Source of the DNA: Rhodosorus marinus CCMP1338
Lineage: Eukaryota > Plantae > Rhodophyta
Direction: 5' to 3'
Assembly: GCA_029953675.1 (NCBI GenBank)
Contig: JAMWBK010000004.1
Location: forward strand, 434,001 to 498,000
Length of the DNA stretch: 64,000 bases
Below, piece after piece: positions 47,571-61,926 of this stretch. The notes under the pieces were generated by a model. It made no database searches. It saw only the letters and a list, made by a program, of their open reading frames with translations, and was not told the DNA's origin. Within the stretch, counting starts at the first letter, position 1. Every line of letters starts with the position of its first letter. Position numbers and translations under genes: made by a program.

Positions 47571-48302
47571 CTAGGGCGCACTCAGTTCCCGCTCTTGACT
47601 GGGTTCGACAACCAACTCTGCAAAGCTCTCGACTTTGTCGAAATCGAATGGGCCACCGACGCTCCCCCAGACGATCTCCTCGGTCTCGAAATCACGGCCA
47701 ACATCCATTGTTATCAGCTTCTTCTCTCCCAGTTCGTAGTTTCCATCGAGGTAAGTTTCCGCGCCCTCCCGAACCACAACGCACTTCCTTCCTGGACGCG
47801 TCGCTCCCTTCCAAGTCTTACTTCCGAAATCATATGACCAATGGCTTGCGCAGTTCAAAGATTCTTCAGATTCCAGTTTAATAACAGAGTTCGGTTTTAT
47901 CAGCTCCAACTTCTCCCTGTTCCTCGTCGCGCTCCTAAACTCAACCGGCTGCTCAAGTTTATACTTTTGACCAACAACGTAGCCATCCTCGTGTTCAGTG
48001 AAGCCAGTGATGAAAGTCAGGTACGGCTCTTTACTCCCATAGTTGTAATCGTAGAAAGACTCAGATAGGATACCAACTCCGTCCACAACCCCGTCTGGAA
48101 TTGGAACATGGAATTGATGAATATGTGCCCAAATCGCTGAATTCTCCCAGGCCTGGTCCTGATTCGACCAGTGTCCGCACAATGCCTTTGCAAGATCCCG
48201 CGCACCGGGAGGCTGATATGCCATACGGACCCTTACACGATCCCTGACTTGTGCAGGCCTGCGCGAACCGATTCCAACTCCCAAACCAGATACAAACGCC
48301 AT
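47571..48302 (-). CDS. cpcT: Nucleus-encoded, plastid-targeted CpcT/CpeT-family phycobiliprotein lyase
   Basis: MAFVSGLG transit peptide; GHWSNQDQAWEN..WAHI, PG.KC.V.R.G.ETYL, D.G.D.ET.E..WGSVGGPFDF. Confidence 0.9.
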   Translation of the reverse strand: MAFVSGLGVGIGSRRPAQVRDRVRVRMAYQPPGARDLAKALCGHWSNQDQAWENSAIWAHIHQFHVPIPDGVVDGVGILSESFYDYNYGSKEPYLTFITGFTEHEDGYVVGQKYKLEQPVEFRSATRNREKLELIKPNSVIKLESEESLNCASHWSYDFGSKTWKGATRPGRKCVVVREGAETYLDGNYELGEKKLITMDVGRDFETEEIVWGSVGGPFDFDKVESFAELVVEPSQERELSAP

Positions 48303-51300
48303 CCTGCAAGAACAAACCCCCCCCCGAACAAACCTTTCGAACGTCAGTGAAGCCTTCGTCGCCCAACGTCAAACTCTTTTCTCTTCCCACCGCCTGGCGC
48401 CCCCGACGTTCACCTTCTTAAAATAGGTCTGACCGAACTACCGAACAGGTGCACGCGGTCGGTGCAAAACGGTTCTGGGCAAACGGTGGGGGATTGTGGA
48501 TGGTTTTTTTTGTTTTTTCTCAGCGATAGCTGCTGCTCTCGAGAATTCTCCAGACCAGGATCTTCCACAAACAAAACACGGAAGAGGAGTTGTAGTAGTA
48601 GATCTCTTTCACATTGCCAGGAGCCTATCTCGGCTATCCATCTCCACTTCCTCGGACCAAATCGAGTCTCAATCGCCATCCTCATTCAACAGATTTCAGA
48701 TTTCCATACTGTCACTCTGAATTCAATCAAATTTAAAGACTGACTATTTCCGTTTGATCTCTGAGGGCCTTCTATTCAGTCTTTATCATACACGGATTGA
48801 AAACAAAGACGACACTGAAAAAGATTTTCAGCCGGATAACGTTTGCTAACAAAAAGAGGGCGTCCACAAACCTTGAAAGATTCCCAAAGTATTTCAAATA
48901 ATAATTTATTTTCTTTATTTACCCGTCGAGGGGATAGCTTGGGGGGCCAGCTAGGGAGCGGTGTGGTTTGATCTCCCTCCAGAATAAAAAATCACGAGAG
49001 CACGAAATCAGGGGCGAGATAGTATTAAATTTACGACAAAGTTGAGTCATAATTGGTTTTTGGAAAATAGTGATGTGAACAGCTGTCTCTTATTCTAAAT
49101 TTATTTTTTTGATTTAGAAGTAGCTTCTATAAAATGAAGAAAACGGCTGAAGCCACTTCAAAAATGCAAAAAAAGAGAGTTTAGAGTTTTTCCGATGGCC
49201 TAGTTTTATTTTTGTCTAGTGAAAAACAAACTTTTTTTTTATCCTTTGAACCGGGACGTGAATTGTAATAAATTTAGAACAGGGCTGAGATTGTTTAACA
49301 AAAACGTCAAAATTATTTATTTGACTGACATTAATATTTAATAAGTGGGTGGAAATTAGTTGACTGTTACCCACTGCGGGACGCAGCTCAAACTCTACTT
49401 GAGGATATTGTGAAGTTTTTAAAAAAGGAATAAAACAGCTTTGAAAAGTTTGTGAAGGCGGGCGGGGCCAGAGTGGTTATAGTTGAGGTTGGGGGGGCCA
49501 TTGCCTTCCGATAGAGCATACGGCCGGTGTAGGAGCTCACCAGGCAAGTAGAATTGCTGCTGGCTTTTGCTTCTGAAATCTTGTGATTCTCACCCTCCCC
49601 CGAACCAGCGACGGTTGTTTCTGGTCGGTGTCCCACTCATCAACACCTGCCCAACGAAACGAAAGAAACCGAAAAAGGAGCCTGGCCGCTGAATTCAGAA
49701 AACAGTGAGTGCTTGCAAAATAATTCCTTTTTTAGTTGTTGATGCTTCCGGGTTTTACCGGATCTCTACTTGTTCTTGGGGTTACGGTGCCCGACGGAAA
49801 TGTCAAAGTCAGCTACCGAGGATCTTGGACTCAGCTGCGCTTCGGCCCCGAGACAATCCGAGATGGAGGTGGGGGGTGGACACAAATATTGTGCATCGAG
49901 AAGGGCCTGAAGCCATCAACCTAAAGATATCCTCTAAGATTGTCCCTCCGGAAACCGCACTGTTGCGACCTCACCTGTACAACGAACCGACGTCGATCTT
50001 TACAAACTTCTAACGGCTTTTCTTCGTTGAGTGTCCCTTCTCTGATTGCTCAGAACCAAACTAGCCTGGGAAGATGAGTTTTGGAGCCCATGTGCTCTTC
50101 CATATTGAATCGACGACAAGTTGAACTTGATGATTCCATAAGATCAACTCAAACTAAAGCCGGAGACCATGGAAAGCACAGATCCACTGGCACAGAATCA
50201 AAGCTCACAGGAAACAGTCCAGGAATAGGCATGGCATATATACCTTCAACCGCCTCTCGCCGTTCCATACCATCATCTTCATACACGTCAAGAACCCAAA
50301 AATTCAAGGTGGAGAGTCCACGCGTCAAGAAAACCGACGCGCTCTCCTGAGCGCGAGTGGGTCTATGAAAATGAAAACTAATCCCATGCTCAGCAAATGT
50401 CCTTAAAATTAAACAAAAACAAAAATGAATTTTTTCTAGCGCTACAAAAAGTTATCAAAATTTCATCAAGCAACCTGGACAAGAATACGTACAAAAATTT
50501 CCTTCTCTGATTGGAAGAATATGAATTTTATACATATTACAGACAAAAACGATTTGGTACTTGATGGAAAATTCCATCTAATTTTTTTTTGGAATGCGAA
50601 GGGAATTTATTTATTGCTTTCTTTTCGCTCAAGCAGCATTATTTTATTCGTCATATTAGGTTCCCAGAGTTTGATTGAGACAACCACCCCCCCTGTTAGT
50701 ACATCATTTTTCTTCAGGGTTGTCTGAACGATTTGGGCATGGGGGCGCGGGGAGGGGGGGGGCGGGGTTGGGGAAGTCGTCTAGAGGGTCACAAATGGGA
50801 CAGGTGGTTTTGGATGTACAGAAGGGAACAGATGGCTTTGCAGGGGATGTATTCAACGGTGGCGCCTTTGTTTTCGACATAGCAGGATATGCCGGTGGAG
50901 CTCGAAGCAGGATGGAATAGAGTCCTTTCTTCAGCATTTCGGAAAGCGCGACGGGAGTGAAGACCGCTTTTGATGTTCGAAGACGGTCCCCGTGACCTTG
51001 GGGTGCCAAGTAGCTTAACTCTGAACCGAACCCGGCAGCTTCACAACCGTGAGCTGCTCATGCAACTCGAAATCATTTTCGTTCTTGCCTTGTGGTTTTG
51101 CTTTGCTTCTATTGCTTTCTTCATAGCCAAGTTCATGAACCGTGTCCACTTCCATGAGACAGCTCAATTTGAGTAACTTTGTCCGCGCCCCCTATGAGAT
51201 GACACAGACGGTAAGGAGGACCCCTCACCTCACCTCACTCCTCAACTTAACGTGACGTAGGAGTACTCCAGAGCGCTTCCAAACCGCTGCCCAGGTCTTC

Positions 51301-53141
51301 ACCAGATCATCTCGCTCCCGCAAGTTCCAAACCACCACAACGAGCGTTAAGAGAAGATACATCACCGCTTCAGGGACCCCCGAAGTTGACCAACCCAACC
51401 ATTTCCCGTTCCCAACACCCTCCATCTGCTCGATCTTTCCAAAAGGGAGAAACTCGTTTTGTCCCAAACGCTTGGGACAAACGATGATCGATTCCTTGTC
51501 TTCCTCCCCCCACCCCTTCACAAGCATTGTCTAGGACCACCGTCCGATTTTTTCGTTCCCAAAGGCCTCCCTGCCCGCGAGGACTCCTCAAGCACCAGCA
51601 CGTATCGATCCACTAAGAAAATGCCCCGTCCACACGGAGGGCTTAGTTGTGTAGGAAATGCTGGTTTTTCAAAAATATTATTCAAAGGTCCATAAAATTT
51701 ATTCACAACCAACTGTCTGGCCGTTCAATCAGAGCGCTCTAGCTGGGATTTATGGTATTTTCTAGTCACAAATACAACCAATAAAATACCGTAATAGATT
51801 CATGATATCCAATCGTTATGATGCTAATCGTCGGTAGTTCTAGATTTTCCCAAAACACATATTCCATTTTTTATATCCCCCTGTTACTTTACTTTTATTT
51901 GTATTTTTCTGAATGCAGCCTTCTCCCCCAATGACCTGCCATCGACTGAATCCATTTTGTTTTCCACCAAACAACAGACGTTTGGTCTAAATGCATACAA
52001 AACTGTTTGCACATCCCCGTACAACTAGCTATTTTACAGGGGGGGTAGCGGGCATGGTTTAATCTTCTCCTTCCTCGAAACAGGATAATTAATATCCAAT
52101 AAACCTGATCAAGATTCGTTGTTCATACCTTTCTTGTTTTTCCAAGCCGTATTTTATTGCATCCTCTTTTTTTTCTCAGTAACAAAATACACCAAAAAAA
52201 AGGGTCATCGGAAAATCAGTGAAAAAACTCCAACCATTCTGTTTCCATACCTCAAAAGGGGCCTTTTACAGCCCACGCCAATTTCTCGGAAAATCTTTGA
52301 AAAAAGCTTAGTTTTTGGAACCCGGCCGCGTTTTTTTTTGGTTTGGAAGCCGCTTACGCGCTAACGAAAAAACCACTATAATTCATTTTATTTCCAATCG
52401 CTGAAGCTTTTTTTCACGAAAAAATCTGTTTCGCTTGTTTTTTTTTTCGGATGGGGAGTTGTCGTTTTAACTATTGGGAGCAGGGGTCATATTTTGTTAT
52501 AAAATATCTGCCCTCACGGAGAGGAAACGAGAGGGGGAAAAAGGAGGGGGGGGTTTTTTGTTGAGGACGAGATGGAAATGGTATTTTTCGGACCAGATTG
52601 GGCATGTATTGAGCACTCGAAGCTAACGTCTGATCCACCCCCCTTTTTTCGACCCCCTTTTCGTTGGGGTTTTAATTCTATGGAAATATAGGGTAGGGTA
52701 TGGAAAAACCATGAGATTCCTGACGTTTAGAAAATTGTTTCGTTTGATACGTATTTACGAACATATCTTGTTGATGGAAAAACGGGAAGGGGGGGTGGAG
52801 TGGGGTAGGTGTTTGATGGAAATTTCTTTGTTCTGAGGAGCATTTGTCATCCATTTTCTCCGGAGGAGATGGGGTTGCGTGGGTTGGGGCTATTGTTCCG
52901 CTGTTGTGTGAGCATATAGGTTTGAGGGTTTGGACGATTTGGGAATGGAGAGGGTAGTAGCGGTGGACGGGGAGTTAGGACGGACGGGGTAGCTAGTGTG
53001 TGGGATGGGTTCGGATAAAACCGGACGAGGTGAGACCATTTCGATTTTGGTTGAAAGGAGGGGTAGAGGGGGGTGAGGCGGTTGGATAGACTAGCATTTG
53101 TTTGGGGGTAGGGAGGGTGTTGCCACGTGAGAGCGTCAAGG

Positions 53142-54332
53142 ATGAGGACCTTTTTTGTTATAGGGCTCGTGGTTGTCTTGGGAGTGGTTAGGGGTCAGGG
53201 TGGAGATTTTGTGCTGGATGAGTCGAGGATTCCGGACTGTCCGACAGATGAAGGGGGGAAGCTGACGGAGGAGTTTCAGCTCACTGTGGTCCGCCCGTTG
53301 TGTACGAATGAATGTTATCCTTATGACGAAGGAATTGATGTGCTTCTAGAAGCTCTGGAGGACGGTCTGAAGTGCCAACAGGAGTTTATTCGGAGCGCCA
53401 GCTCCGACGCGGAAGAAACAATGCCTCCGCTTACCCCGGACGAGGCAGCGTTTGCCCAACTCGTGTGGGACGGTACCCTAGAGACGGCTGCGTATGACAA
53501 CTCTTGTACAGCCATTGTGGATGGAGAGAAGAAGTTGTGCTTCAATGCGGAGGCTGTTCTTGAGCTTGTGAAGGCGAACGAATTATTCTGCTTTGATCCC
53601 GAGTCAAATTCGCCTTTACCGACACCATCTGACTTGTCAATAGTCTTGAACTGCGATCCGGAGTTCACCTTTAGGATGGACTCCTTCAAGCCATCCGCTG
53701 AACTTCAGGAGCAGGTTGATGCACCGCCACCTGTGGAGGATCCATCGCAATGCGTCGTGCCCAACGGGTGTTCTGTCGGTGACACGATTAGGCTTTACTA
53801 TTACCAGGCGAACTTAGTAGTGAATCTTCAAACTTTGATTGAAGAGCAGTTCACAATGAAGCAGAAACTGTTCAGACAGAAGAGATTCGTTAGGGAGTTG
53901 AAGGAGACTTGCGAGAGCCCTAACTGCGTATCTATTCTGCAGCAAAAGCTTCCGGTTCTCAATGACGAAATTGCGACCATTCAGGATCGACTTGGTCAAG
54001 TTGAGATACAGTTGGCTGAGGCTGAGGCGTTCTTGGAGCTGGTCGTGGCGCAGCTTCCGGGCGGTGGCGGAGCTGTTCGTGTCGCGACAACGTTGGTGAG
54101 TCGAGCAGACTCAGGAACCACTTGGCCAAGGTGTAGGGATAGGAGGGAATGTGATGGCCACGTTTGGCAAGCAAACGTCTGGATCAACTCACAATGCCGA
54201 TCGATTTGCGTCGGATTCCCATGTCAGCAACGGCTGACGATTAAGTGGTGCTTATCGGAAACGCTCAAGAGCGGGCTCACAAGGCCGAACTGCCATGCCA
54301 ACGCCTACACTCGAGATACGTGCTTCCCATAG
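53142..54332 (+). CDS. Secreted Cys-rich coiled-coil protein, acidic paralog
   Basis: Signal peptide MRTFFVIGLVVVLGVVRG; intronless; collinear Cys pattern with 56143-57357; C-terminal WPRCRDRRECDGH...CHANAYTRDTCFP. Confidence 0.9.
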   Translation: MRTFFVIGLVVVLGVVRGQGGDFVLDESRIPDCPTDEGGKLTEEFQLTVVRPLCTNECYPYDEGIDVLLEALEDGLKCQQEFIRSASSDAEETMPPLTPDEAAFAQLVWDGTLETAAYDNSCTAIVDGEKKLCFNAEAVLELVKANELFCFDPESNSPLPTPSDLSIVLNCDPEFTFRMDSFKPSAELQEQVDAPPPVEDPSQCVVPNGCSVGDTIRLYYYQANLVVNLQTLIEEQFTMKQKLFRQKRFVRELKETCESPNCVSILQQKLPVLNDEIATIQDRLGQVEIQLAEAEAFLELVVAQLPGGGGAVRVATTLVSRADSGTTWPRCRDRRECDGHVWQANVWINSQCRSICVGFPCQQRLTIKWCLSETLKSGLTRPNCHANAYTRDTCFP

Positions 54333-56142
54333 GCTTTGGTGGTAGTGTTCAAGAGGTCATTAATTTCATGTACAGAGTCGGATCACGCGAAGATCAGTTG
54401 TGGTCCACGAGTTTTCTATTAAACGGAGCCGTGTAGAAAACCTGCTTCAGAACCTGAGGTTGCCGAGTAATACATCCTGTTGCAGGCGTCGTGGATTTGA
54501 CTGTGGACACGAAGGGCCTGTTCAAATTTCCTCCAGCCACCAGCGAGGAACCCATTGTTTAAGCGCAGCACGCGTCGTAGAGAGAGAACCATGACAGGAA
54601 CCATGGACAGAATCACTCATCCGTAGTTCCTGACACCGACAGCCGTATTGTCTCAGCCGTGCTTTGAACCCTGGTTCGTCCGGAGAACGGTTATTCCGTT
54701 CACAGAACATGAGAAGCGCCTTGCTCCAACTCGGGACCGAAATTCGGCTTCGTCAACCCTCGTACCTTCTTCGCCTGCACCGCTTGCTTAAATCTCTGGC
54801 TGTCTATACGAACCCCGTTCTTGCTCTCCACCCACTAACACAGTACAGCACATATATCCTCCGTGCGCTTTTCCTTTACCCACCAGCCAACCGTCAACGG
54901 CCAATCAAAAAAAAAAACACAGAAAGAGAGAAAAAAAAACCAACCCATGACGGTATATCTCTCCAGTACAGATTTAGGTGCTAGTTCACAAAATATGAAT
55001 TTTTGGGAGATAAATATTCAATTTGACAAAATTTTTGATCATACGTGACATAAATTATGAAGTAACTTTCTACATTTATTCGATAATGTTTCATGGTTGT
55101 TTTTTTTTCCTTAAAAGTTGATCGGAGAGGGCGACTGAGATATTTGCCAGTTGGCTAACTCGATCTGCACTTTGAAAGCGTGGCGTGGAGGAAGTTTCCG
55201 TTGAATGATGAATGGGGTCAAAGAAGAACCGCCACCTAACTCTCTTCGCGATCAGGAAACAGTACCGAAAAGCAATCGAAAAGTGGCCAGGGTAGAGAGG
55301 GGGGAGGAGGAGCTGTCCCGGGTATTGATCTCTATCCTTTTTTTTGAATTCTGATTATCCGGGAGATGAAGAGGCGCGCGGTGTGTGGGTGTGTGGGAAT
55401 GGGGCTCTTCTTTGTCTGCGGTACACGACATCCGAGGCGCGTAACCCGAGCACACAGTGCTCGGCTAATCAAAAGAAAAAGGAGTGATACTTCTTATCTA
55501 CTCAAAACAATAACACAATATACGCTTTAACCTTCCCAGAAAAAGAAGATAAGAAACCATCACCCAGACCGCCATTCCACCTAATCTTTGACTGCCAAAA
55601 CCTACCTCACCCCGGACCTCCCACTCCTCCCCCTCCCAAACTGCAATGCGCAATGTTCCGGAGGGCCTCGGGCCCCAACACCTTAAAACGAAAGTTACTG
55701 ACTAGAAACCTAACGAAAGTTAATACTAAGGGGGGGGGGTTAACTTATTCTCGTTTACTTAATATTTGATTCTGAATCTTTTCATATTAAACTATTTTTA
55801 TCCAGTATTTTTACCCTTCTTACATTCCAAATTCAATTTTAATAAGGGGGGGAGAAGGTTGAGGGGAGAAATTAATTTTTTTTCTTGCGTTGATCAAAAT
55901 TTCTTTTTCTGGTTGGCAAGCAGTTGCTCGGCTTGCATGTAAGATTTCTTCACGGGCTGAACTTCTCAGCTTCGCTTGTAGGGCTGGCGACGAGTATATA
56001 TATCTAGAGAGCCGGTGAGATATGGGAGCTTTGTTGAGGGTAAGGGGAGAAAGGGATGAGGAGGATGAGAATGGGTTTCCTGGTGGTGGTGGAGTTTTTT
56101 GGAGGAGGGTGTTTTTGGCGGATCGCTGGATTTTGATGAGAG

Positions 56143-57357
56143 ATGAGGGTTTTGGGATTGGCGTGCCTGGTGATTGTCCTGGTTTTTCTGCCGGGAGGGG
56201 AATGTGGTAGTAACTTTAATTTGAACAAGTCGAGGATACCAAAGTGCCCTGTGAACAGAAAAGGCCAGCTGACGGAGGAGTTTCGGCTGGGCCTGGTACG
56301 GCCTCTGTGCGTCCATGAGTGTTGGCCGTTCAAGGAGGGAAAGGAGACGCTTTTGATCGCCTTGGAAGCTGGTTTGAAGTGTCATCGGGAGAATATTGCG
56401 TATTCTGGTTTCGGTTATAGGGGTCTCGGTGGTCGTCCGCTTACCCCGGAGGAGCTTAAGTTCACTAAAAGGACTTGGAACAAGGTATTGAAGAGGGTGG
56501 CGTATAAAGATTCCTGCCGATTCAAGGGTCCAAGTGCAGGAAACAAGTTATGCTTCAGTGCAGAGGCTGTGGTTGAGCTCGTGAGGGCAAACGAAGAGTA
56601 CTGCTTCGACCCTGGTTGCGGCAAACGACGATCTCCCCCCAAGGACTTGGCAATAGTGATGAACTGCGATCCCGAGTTTTCTTTGGAAGAAGATCCGTTC
56701 AAGCCATCTCCTGAACTGCAGGACCGAATAGCTGAAGTGGCCCCCGTGCGAAGCCCCTCCCGATGTCTGCTACCTGGCCGGTGCACTGATGCAGAGATCC
56801 TTCTGCTTTACTTCTACCAGTCTCGTCTGGTGATGAACCTTCAGCAACTGATAGCAGAGCTGGAGAAGATGAAAAGAAAATTCTTCAGACAGAAGCGGTT
56901 CATTAGAAACTTTCAGTGCAAATGCAGGCGGAGGGGTTGCAAGGATCTCCTCGCGAGAAAGATTCCAGTCATCCTGGAGGAAATTACGCAGCTTACCGAG
57001 CGGATTCAGTACCTGAAGCGAGAGCTAAGAGTTGCTGAGGACTTTTTAGAGCGGTTGAAGGAGGTTCTCCCTTCTCATGGTCCAGGGGAGCCTACTCTAG
57101 CCGCGACTGTGGGGGGGGCCCTTTCCGTGCGAGCCGATATCCAGTGGCCAAAATGCAGGGACAGGACTGTATGTGACGGCCACAATTGGAAGCCAAACGT
57201 GTGGCTCAACTCCCAATGTCGTTCCGTATGCGTCGGTTTTCCCTGTATTGACAGGCTCACTATAAAGTGGTGCGTATCGGAAACGGTCAAGAGTGGTCTA
57301 ACCAAGAAGAACTGCCACGCCAACGCCTACACGAGGGACAGATGCTTCCCTTTTTAG
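56143..57357 (+). CDS. Secreted Cys-rich coiled-coil protein, basic paralog
   Basis: Signal peptide MRVLGLACLVIVLVFLPGGECG; 404 aa; collinear with 53142-54332. Confidence 0.9.
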   Translation: MRVLGLACLVIVLVFLPGGECGSNFNLNKSRIPKCPVNRKGQLTEEFRLGLVRPLCVHECWPFKEGKETLLIALEAGLKCHRENIAYSGFGYRGLGGRPLTPEELKFTKRTWNKVLKRVAYKDSCRFKGPSAGNKLCFSAEAVVELVRANEEYCFDPGCGKRRSPPKDLAIVMNCDPEFSLEEDPFKPSPELQDRIAEVAPVRSPSRCLLPGRCTDAEILLLYFYQSRLVMNLQQLIAELEKMKRKFFRQKRFIRNFQCKCRRRGCKDLLARKIPVILEEITQLTERIQYLKRELRVAEDFLERLKEVLPSHGPGEPTLAATVGGALSVRADIQWPKCRDRTVCDGHNWKPNVWLNSQCRSVCVGFPCIDRLTIKWCVSETVKSGLTKKNCHANAYTRDRCFPF

Positions 57358-57858
57358 GCTGTGTTTCAGAACGGCCAGGTGAAGTTGTTGTGACTCTTCA
57401 CTGAGGCGCCACGTTCATCAATTTTGCTACATCGCTGGTCCTTGCCGTTTCCAATAGATCCCGTGAAACCCGCTCGCAACATCCAACCTTTGAGCACCAG
57501 CGGGAGCTTTGCGACCTTTTATGTCAATGATCCTATGGAACGAGACGACGACTTCAGGCAGTCCTAATATGATTAGGAAACAAGACTAAACAGCAAAAAA
57601 CGGGAAGTTTCTATGCATGTGCTCTTTTTGGACGAGGCCTTTCCTTCTGCTTGGTTCCTACTTCACAAGGCTGACCCCCTGGGGTTACGTTAGCTCATAC
57701 GGTTTTAATGATGCGCAACTACATGTCCGACGTTATACAGGAAATTGGGACACGAGGTGGAGATTATCCTTTCACACTGCACGGAAACAATTTGCTTTGG
57801 AGATCAACCGCAGCCCAGCTGCACTGGATCTGGGACCTGGAATATGTTAACACCCGTT

Positions 57859-58843: not shown

Positions 58844-59398
58844 ATGATTCGGATGTTGAGCCTGCGTGCTTTCCTGGCCGTTGGACTTGTGGCAGGCTTC
58901 GCTTATGCAGGAGAAACAGGCTTTCAAGAAGCTGCTTTTGACTATGAACTAGAGGATGCAGGCATTGCAGTTGATTACGAAAGCATCAACTGGGCCGCGA
59001 ACGAGCTCAGCGATGGTAGTGGTGATCGATCAGCATGGGACTTCGAGGGCTTGATCGATAAGTATGGACCTGACTATTTCACCGACAATCCGCCTCCTGG
59101 GAGTTTTCAGGGAGAGTATGATCGGTACAGCGGTGACTACGAGGGAGACTATGGCTACGACTCGGATGGTCTCAGTGGTGGTGCCATCGCGGGTATCGTG
59201 ATCGGCTCTGTGGTCGGCGCGGCACTTCTCGCTGGGCTTATGATCTTCGCTCTGAAAAGGAAGAGGAGGCGAAGAAGAGGAGAAGAGAAAACAGATGCAG
59301 AGACCGAGGAAGATGCCGAAAACTTGGAAGCGGACCACGGGGGAGAGTTTAAGGCCTACTACGACCGCTCAGGCCAGTGCACGTGTTGCTGCTGCTGA
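58844..59398 (+). CDS. Type I single-pass membrane protein, Tyr/Asp-rich ectodomain, C-terminal CTCCCC
   Basis: Signal peptide, GLSGGAIAGIVIGSVVGAALLAGLMIFAL TM, KRKRRRRR stop-transfer and a terminal Cys cluster. Confidence 0.88.
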   Translation: MIRMLSLRAFLAVGLVAGFAYAGETGFQEAAFDYELEDAGIAVDYESINWAANELSDGSGDRSAWDFEGLIDKYGPDYFTDNPPPGSFQGEYDRYSGDYEGDYGYDSDGLSGGAIAGIVIGSVVGAALLAGLMIFALKRKRRRRRGEEKTDAETEEDAENLEADHGGEFKAYYDRSGQCTCCCC

Positions 59399-61407: not shown

Positions 61408-61926
61408 ATGGCGATGACGAGTATCTTCACCCCGCTACTTCTTGGAGCCTTCCTGTTGGCGGTTGCCCTTGGTCATGGCGTGAGCGAAGAGTTCGATAAC
61501 AATCTCCAGCAAGTTGGAAAGTGGGCTAGCCATGTCGATGAGCGGGATAGTGCACAATCTCCGTACGGCAGATCCCCGTACTACAGCGAACGCAATGAAG
61601 ATTACGATGAGAGGTATCCGCAGTACGAAGGAAACTATGACTACAACTATGACGATGGCCTTGGTGCCGGTGCTATCGCTGGGATCGTAGTTGGTTCCGT
61701 GGTTGTTGTTGCCGGAATTGGAACCGGCCTCGCTTTCGGGCTCAAGAGAAGGAGGAAGAGGAGAAAGAACCAGGATATTGAAGATGGCGGCGACGACGAC
61801 CAATACCAGAGCAATAGGCCAGATCTCTGCTCGCTGAGCGATCTGTGCGGTTGTTCTCAGACCAACAACGAGGGCTACTACGATGACGATGGTAATTTTG
61901 TCGAGGATATTGAAGATAAGGTTTAG
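61408..61926 (+). CDS. Type I single-pass membrane protein, paralog of 58844-59398
   Basis: Signal peptide, YEGNYDYNYDDGLGAGAIAGIVVGSVV TM, KRRRKRRK and cytosolic LCSLSDLCGC. Confidence 0.88.
   Translation: MAMTSIFTPLLLGAFLLAVALGHGVSEEFDNNLQQVGKWASHVDERDSAQSPYGRSPYYSERNEDYDERYPQYEGNYDYNYDDGLGAGAIAGIVVGSVVVVAGIGTGLAFGLKRRRKRRKNQDIEDGGDDDQYQSNRPDLCSLSDLCGCSQTNNEGYYDDDGNFVEDIEDKV

Follow-up and report, generated by a model that had tools for sequence, protein, structure and literature searches.

The DNA considered here, referred to as the window, is a 64,000-nucleotide stretch of nuclear DNA from the red alga Rhodosorus marinus CCMP1338 (positions 434,001 to 498,000 of the forward strand of contig JAMWBK010000004.1, assembly GCA_029953675.1); a chromosome-level assembly of this strain is described in PMC10250338. 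Two neighbouring open reading frames (ORFs) in the window, A and B, lie on the plus strand, both lack introns and encode related proteins of opposite calculated charge, A being acidic and B basic. The features of the two genes, in window coordinates, are as follows.

53111–53141, plus strand: probable 5′ untranslated region (UTR) of A; the orthologous transcript contigs L001 and L002 are colinear from 53111 and 53128.
53142–54332, plus strand: coding sequence of A, the acidic copy, 396 amino acids (aa) counted from the first ATG; GCA_029953675.1 has a called gene of the same length.
53142–53195, plus strand: predicted signal peptide of A (MRTFFVIGLVVVLGVVRG), judged by eye: the n-region is basic, the hydrophobic core spans 14 residues, and V-R-G precedes Q19.
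53211–53756, plus strand: predicted N-terminal Cys-rich alpha/beta domain of A (aa 24–205); predicted local distance difference test score (pLDDT) in the AlphaFold2 (AF2) model mostly 65–90.
53757–54071, plus strand: predicted helical hairpin of A (aa 206–310), from heptad analysis and the AF2 model (pLDDT 74–92).
54123–54329, plus strand: C-terminal 8-Cys/2-His domain of A (aa 328–396), the most conserved module.
54333–54845, plus strand: probable 3′ UTR of A (minimum extent); L001 is colinear to 54845.
55995–56003, plus strand: TATATATAT run, a possible TATA element of B, suggested by its position about 20–30 nt upstream of the L004 alignment start (56026).
56026–56142, plus strand: probable 5′ UTR of B; L004 aligns from 56026 and L003 from 56133.
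56143–57357, plus strand: coding sequence of B, the basic copy, 404 aa; both an ORF and a called gene.
57145–57354, plus strand: C-terminal 8-Cys/2-His domain of B.
57358–57790, plus strand: probable 3′ UTR of B (minimum extent); L003 is colinear to 57790.

A and B are real genes. Close relatives in the databases are confined to Rhodosorus marinus proteins from two transcriptomes of the Marine Microbial Eukaryote Transcriptome Sequencing Project (MMETSP), which supply two orthologues of A (P0001 and P0002, 86% and 83% identical to it) and two of B (P0003 and P0005). Protein B itself is identical to the database protein P0004, which comes from the same contig and assembly. Each orthologue lies on its own transcript contig of 1.6–2.0 kb, and the contigs align with the window, colinear and gap-free, over 53111–54845 for A and 56026–57790 for B. 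Because the contigs are separate, colinear and free of gaps, it follows that both genes are expressed, monocistronic and intron-less, with UTRs. A preliminary description of this DNA, made from the sequence alone, had presented the two genes as tandem paralogues with a common Cys scaffold. This holds: the proteins are 50% identical end to end (BLASTP, E = 2e-139), all 20 Cys residues of A align with Cys in B, and every string that the description quoted was found in place. A tblastn search of the window revealed no further copy. The two loci were found to be similar only within their coding regions, which indicates that the duplication is old, and no promoter motifs common to A and B were found. 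No element comparable to the TATATATAT run of B is evident upstream of A, where the preceding 350 nt are G-rich and purine-rich.

The calculated isoelectric points (pI) of the whole proteins are 4.49 for A and 9.32 for B. With the first 20 residues removed, as in the mature proteins, they are 4.42 and 9.35, and the net charges are about −27 and +24. Asp plus Glu and Lys plus Arg number 59 and 34, respectively, in A and 45 and 69 in B. Beyond residue 20, 64 aligned columns carry a more positive charge in B than in A and 22 a more negative one; the changes sum to +51, and a sign-randomization test gave z = 4.7. Over the whole alignment the count is 64 columns up versus 23 down (binomial p = 1.3e-5). 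The charge shift exceeds chance, and the systematic inversion that had been claimed for the pair is borne out by pI values that are far from similar.

The shift is directional in all three Rhodosorus isolates (z = 4.4–5.4). The pI is 4.39–4.42 in the A clade and 9.2–9.5 in the B clade, and the net charges of A and B are −27/+24, −30/+29 and −26/+20, isolate by isolate. Charge-altering replacements do occur inside each clade and balance out (|z| < 1.4). The two genes have the same GC content (0.521), and their GC content at third codon positions (GC3) is 0.58 and 0.60; with GC and GC3 equal in this way, mutational bias or base composition is not the cause of the shift. Between orthologues, the ratio of nonsynonymous to synonymous substitution rates (dN/dS) is 0.17–0.27 in the A clade and 0.26–0.29 in the B clade, at dS values of 0.27–0.49, and selection is purifying in every region. 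The paralogues have reached saturation at synonymous sites (dS of 1.4 to above 2.7). When computed region by region, the paralogue dN is 0.23 in the C-terminal domain and 0.45–0.55 elsewhere, and the corresponding dN/dS is lowest in that domain (0.12), with values of 0.24–0.26 elsewhere. Both charge states have been kept by purifying selection after duplication. Because the difference in charge is conserved in three isolates, directional, placed on predicted polar helix faces and under purifying selection, it is very probably functional.

Both proteins comprise, in order, a predicted signal peptide, a Cys-rich alpha/beta N-domain, a helical hairpin stalk and a small C-terminal domain. The net charges of these modules, and of the linker, are as follows.

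N-domain: A −29, B +8.
Helical hairpin: A −3, B +10.
Linker: A +1, B −1.
C-terminal domain: A +5, B +7.

Thus about three-quarters of the shift (37 charges) falls in the N-domain, about one-quarter in the hairpin and almost none in the C-terminal domain. On the predicted amphipathic helices, most charged residues sit on the polar half, and the hydrophobic moment points in nearly the same direction in A and B. The densest inversion, +13 over 40 columns, includes the predicted helix 99–119 (PDEAAFAQLVWDGTLETAAYD in A and PEELKFTKRTWNKVLKRVAYK in B), which has five acidic and no basic residues in A and seven basic and two acidic residues in B. Elsewhere in the family, the N-domain has a net charge of −18 and −19 in the Rhodosorus outgroup paralogues and of −4 to −18 in members from Bangiopsis. 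When the clade-fixed charge changes were polarized by outgroups, 20 were B-derived and five A-derived. Given these acidic outgroup N-domains and the 20-to-5 split, comparison of the sequences indicates that the family is ancestrally acidic and that B is the derived, recharged copy, with A having moved somewhat further in the acidic direction. In terms of the predicted structure, solvent-facing residues of the N-domain and hairpin were recharged in B, and the hydrophobic core, all Cys residues and the C-terminal domain were kept.

In A and in B alike, the signal-like N terminus holds the highest hydropathy window of the protein. All 13 aligned family members begin with M-R/K followed by a hydrophobic stretch, have no other hydrophobic segment and contain 17–25 Cys residues each. 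On these sequence features, A and B are probably secreted. The structure was modelled with AF2 from a 13-sequence alignment (pLDDT of 76; predicted template modelling score (pTM) of 0.67), which is shallow because the family was found in two genera only; a first model, built from six sequences, was too poor (pLDDT of 48) and was set aside. The N-domain is modelled as a strand (56–60), two helices (61–86 and 99–119), a beta hairpin (121–135) and a further helix (136–150). Its family-invariant residues, C33, P52, C54, E57, C78, C122, C150 and C171 in the numbering of A, are present in both A and B, and C58 of A is invariant inside Rhodosorus only.

The hairpin of A is predicted to contain two 45-residue helices, 212–256 and 260–304, with the loop C257-ESPN-C262 (C-x4-C) between them. 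A basic cluster on the first helix, KQKLFRQKRFVR in A, follows a pattern common to both copies, MK[RQ]K[LF]FRQKRF[VI]R. The second helix has a clean a/d heptad with polar e/g positions. Its g positions are uninverted between A and B (K/K, E/E and R/R), and only two of its e positions are more basic in B, one by reversal (E to K) and one by gain (V to K). The central coiled coil that had been described for both proteins is supported in so far as long helices with heptads are predicted; it is better read as an intramolecular hairpin. In the model, the two helices probably pack as an antiparallel, two-stranded hairpin without an extra seam for oligomerization.

The C-terminal domain is small and mixed in the model. 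Thirteen of its columns are invariant in the 13 proteins (C331, C337, H340, C352, C356, C361, C370, G378, T380, C384, R391, C394 and F395) and H385 is near-invariant, so that all members conform to the pattern C-x5-C-x2-H ... C-x3-C-x4-C-x8-C ... G-x-T-x3-C-H ... R-x2-C-F. At the nucleotide level the A domain is 76% identical to 57145–57350 of B. The preliminary description had called the C-terminal ~70 aa of the two proteins near-identical. This is indeed their best-conserved part, at an amino-acid identity of just 76% over 71 aa. The C termini read CFP in A and CFPF in B, which has one extra residue.

In addition to the 20 shared Cys residues, B has four of its own: two belong to the signal peptide or its vicinity, and two are specific to the B clade. 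The extra Cys residues conserved in the B clade occupy positions aligned with S155 and E255 of A, within CFDPGC and FQCKC. C21 of B, near the signal cleavage region, is also present in Bangiopsis members and is missing from the A clade. Depending on the cleavage site, mature B may, from its sequence, hold an odd number of Cys residues, which would leave a free thiol or allow an intermolecular disulfide.

A profile search covering 1.84 billion representative proteins returned eight true relatives and one coiled-coil false positive, with no relative in other red algae or in any other organism. The search retrieved the Bangiopsis members through their C-terminal domain, at E values of 1.5e-16 to 2.9e-6. 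The family has four copies in Rhodosorus (A, B, P0014 with a pI of 5.4 and P0015 with a pI of 5.2) and six in Bangiopsis sp. CCMP1999 (P0008, P0009, P0010, P0012, P0013 and P0016, with pI values of 4.8–8.8); both genera belong to the Stylonematophyceae. Among the six, P0009 and P0013 are named as Bangiopsis proteins, P0008, P0010 and P0012 share the sample of P0009, and P0016, which was added by a word-indexed search with the family alignment, was placed in Bangiopsis solely as the close sister of P0012 (100% bootstrap). A word-indexed search with the C-domain alignment gave zero matches, and a scan of metagenome contigs with a six-sequence alignment found no relative. Neighbour-joining places A and B as sisters (100% bootstrap) and groups all Rhodosorus copies together (98%), apart from those of Bangiopsis. 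The sisters P0012 and P0016 differ in net charge by 13, with pI values of 6.5 and 8.8, and charge diversification thus recurs outside Rhodosorus. The helical middle varies across the family; in P0010 (transcript contig L006) the hairpin is almost absent, and a Lys/Glu-rich insertion (EKEAEKAEK...) follows the signal peptide.

The preliminary description had recognized no family for A and B, and our searches agree with it. Pfam gave no match above noise for A, B, their orthologues or the C-domains of 13 members, and profile searches of all Protein Data Bank (PDB) sequences with the whole protein, the C-domain or the N-domain came back empty. Foldseek searches of PDB and BFVD yielded only generic long-helix hairpins (best E values of 0.27 and 0.07), and no paper on this protein family was found in the literature. 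Three candidate assignments were rejected. The UniRef name of P0003 (A0A7S2ZNC3) is 'SCP domain-containing protein', and its five closest relatives are named 'uncharacterized'. The CAP/SCP/PR-1 family (PF00188) has no Pfam match at E ≤ 10 in six full-length members, and no CAP protein appeared among PDB sequences at E ≤ 10 with the N-domain profile, and the Foldseek matches listed include no CAP structure; the name probably stems from a marginal hit in automatic annotation. For the ShKT/Crisp domain, the only Crisp match (E = 4.2; 8.5 bits against a cut-off of 27) lies in the N-domain, with none in the C-domain, and the six-Cys pattern is unlike that of the C-domain, which has eight Cys residues and other spacing. 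The ClyA-type alpha-pore-forming toxins entered the Foldseek list through AhlC, at E values of 0.4–0.7, query template modelling scores (TM-scores) of 0.13–0.23 and root-mean-square deviations of 15–34 Å; as far as the predicted structure goes, this likeness is generic long-helix similarity only. As judged from the sequences, A and B are probably old tandem duplicates in an uncharacterized secreted disulfide-rich family, so far found only in stylonematophycean red algae.

Cells of the Stylonematophyceae are embedded in anionic mucilage. We tentatively propose, as a reading that may well prove wrong, that A and B are extracellular-matrix (mucilage or cell-surface) proteins specialized by charge, with B binding polyanionic mucilage. 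The conserved C-terminal domain would serve one common contact in both proteins. Basic B would adhere to anionic surfaces, whether those of the polyanionic matrix, with its sulfated or carboxylated polysaccharides, or others. Acidic A would retain the ancestral behaviour: the matrix would repel it, or cations would tie it to the matrix. A and B would attract each other and may associate, although the data do not call for a defined heterodimer. The preliminary description had raised a similar division of labour, in which the basic copy binds sulfated wall polysaccharide and the acidic copy binds Ca; Pfam recognized no Ca-binding motif in A. Several observations weigh against a charge-specialized matrix role. 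Pfam, the PDB profiles and Foldseek gave no similarity to known wall or matrix proteins, and there are no conserved N-glycosylation sequons. The basic cluster on hairpin helix 1 is kept by both copies, not by B alone, so polyanion binding may fail to distinguish them. The matrix role is suggested by the signal peptide, the Cys residues and the charge, and the signal peptides of A and B were judged by eye rather than with a trained predictor.

The preliminary description had also suggested an electrostatically paired heterodimer. Such an A:B dimer, obligate or regulated, in which the acidic N-domain and stalk of A dock on their basic counterparts in B, is a possibility that we regard as doubtful. 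The genes form a same-strand tandem, all three isolates retain and express both copies, and the net charges of the two proteins are almost equal and opposite within each isolate, a relation that has three points only. The most acidic A is paired with the most basic B across isolates, but with three points this rank order would arise by chance one time in six. The helix face at 99–119 is acidic in A and basic in B, and the two clade-specific Cys residues of B, with its possibly odd mature Cys count, could form an intermolecular disulfide. However, about 50 charges spread over some 300 residues go far beyond the need of one interface, and the e/g positions of the regular helix are largely alike in the two proteins. 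The 45-residue helices with their stapled loop of three to four residues fit an intramolecular hairpin, whose polar e/g positions offer no extra hydrophobic seam for a four-helix bundle. Because the shift is spread so widely and the e/g positions are uninverted, a simple acid/base coiled-coil zipper between A and B is unlikely on the predicted structure.

A broader version, which we consider unlikely, would make A and B the two components of an extracellular assembly that forms by itself from oppositely charged proteins whose fold has no known relative. It would be either a defined heterodimer or a charge-driven network with the anionic mucilage. The C-terminal domain would then act as a novel binding module, with sulfated polysaccharide as one possible ligand, and the whole would be specific to stylonematophycean red algae.

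Instead of a matrix ligand, B might have acquired a new function as a cationic defence protein that binds anionic microbial envelopes, with A keeping the ancestral role. B is derived, has gained about 35 Lys and Arg residues (69, compared with 34 in A) and is secreted, cysteine-rich and stable, and charge variation recurs between paralogues, including P0012 and P0016 of Bangiopsis, as is typical of families at an external interface. Against these points, the dN/dS of the B clade does not point to diversifying selection still at work, B, at about 380 residues, far exceeds typical cationic antimicrobial proteins in size, and Pfam and Foldseek returned no similarity to known defence proteins. On balance, we regard a defence function as distinctly unlikely.

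Very unlikely, in our estimation, is that A and B do the same job in different compartments or in different ionic or pH settings, in the manner of the acidic apoplastic and basic vacuolar isoforms of plant pathogenesis-related (PR) proteins. Duplication of secreted plant proteins commonly yields acidic/basic isoform pairs, and A and B both keep the scaffold and all invariant residues. Yet B has no C-terminal sorting extension, ending as it does one residue beyond A, and neither protein has a second targeting signal or a membrane segment.

That the charge difference is a functionless by-product of neutral divergence or mutational bias is most improbable: the paralogues are old and saturated at synonymous sites, and proteomes show bimodal pI distributions, such that paralogues can land in different modes, but the shift is strongly directional in all three isolates, GC and GC3 are equal, net charge is steady inside each clade despite 13–19% residue turnover, and the shift is confined to two of three modules.

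The surroundings of A and B within the window have low gene density, and the ORFs there are largely intron-free. A CpeT/CpcT bilin-lyase ORF lies upstream of A, and an apparent second tandem pair and an astacin-domain gene lie downstream of B.

47571–48302, minus strand: CpeT/CpcT bilin-lyase ORF.
48400–53100: about 4.7 kb between the CpeT gene and A, ORF-poor, with a GC content of 0.45 and no called gene in the assembly.
58844–59398, plus strand: first gene of the apparent second pair, 184 aa.
61408–61926, plus strand: second gene of that pair, 172 aa.
About 63615 to beyond 64000, plus strand: called gene for a 530-aa protein with Astacin and C2 Pfam domains, which leaves the window.

The 184- and 172-aa proteins, both called genes in the assembly and located directly downstream of B, each have a signal peptide, an acidic Tyr/Asp-rich ectodomain (GEYDRYSGDYEGDYGYDSDG and YDERYPQYEGNYDYNYDDG, respectively), a single transmembrane helix with the shared motif GAIAGIV[IV]GSVV, a polybasic stop-transfer sequence (KRKRRRRR and KRRRKRRK, respectively) and then an acidic tail, and the 184-aa protein ends in CTCCCC. 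The similarity between them is weak (BLASTP, E = 0.007) and covers the juxtamembrane motif only. Judging by their sequences, the acidic ectodomains could in principle partner basic B. With A, B, the two membrane proteins and the astacin-domain protein, five consecutive plus-strand genes from 53 kb onwards have secretory or extracellular features.

Red-algal extracellular matrices matter ecologically and commercially, yet very little is known of the proteins in them beyond a few species. A and B provide a clean natural experiment in this setting: one scaffold in two versions about 50 net-charge units apart, maintained by selection and placed in a chromosome-level genome. If the split does reflect matrix binding or pairing, it would offer a handle on the organization of mucilage in unicellular red algae, and a disulfide-rich fold and a binding domain, both new, might come with it. 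Otherwise, A and B are a well-documented case of surface recharging after duplication. For now the result is descriptive and concerns an orphan family whose function is inferred.

Charge-shifted paralogues have precedents, whereas the protein family and its predicted fold have no recognized relatives. Type I and type II keratins, like A and B, are co-retained paralogues of opposite net charge with helical heptad segments. Keratins, however, are cytoplasmic and form obligate heterodimers through a long parallel coiled-coil rod, whereas A and B are probably secreted and disulfide-rich, with helices that look like an intramolecular hairpin; the e/g positions of A and B are uninverted, most of their charge shift lies in a globular domain, and they bear no sequence or fold relation to keratins. 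More generally, the opposite e/g charges of acid/base heterodimeric coiled coils (keratin I/II and Fos/Jun) are not found in A and B. As for the long uninterrupted heptad rod of that class, the model shows two 45-residue helices split by the C-x4-C turn, which would fit an intramolecular hairpin.

Eosinophil cationic protein arose from an RNase duplicate by gain of arginines. The resulting pair, RNase 3 and RNase 2, resembles A and B in that a secreted disulfide-bonded protein was duplicated in tandem and one copy gained basic residues directionally. The two RNases are both basic, and their fold and catalytic residues are known, whereas A and B flip from about −27 to +24. The acidic and basic isoforms of plant PR-1, PR-2, PR-3 and PR-5 are likewise secreted Cys-containing paralogues that share one fold at widely different pI. 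The C-terminal vacuolar sorting peptide that is usual in basic PR isoforms is missing from B, and these proteins have no homology to A or B. Finally, in Penicillium digitatum, the secreted cysteine-rich anionic protein Sca modulates the activity of the cationic antifungal protein AfpB (PMC7711571), so that, as with A and B, a single organism makes an anionic and a cationic secreted cysteine-rich protein. The two fungal proteins are small, are not presented as related in the abstract of that paper and interact functionally, without a complex being shown (PMC7711571), whereas A and B are 50% identical to each other and about 400 aa long.

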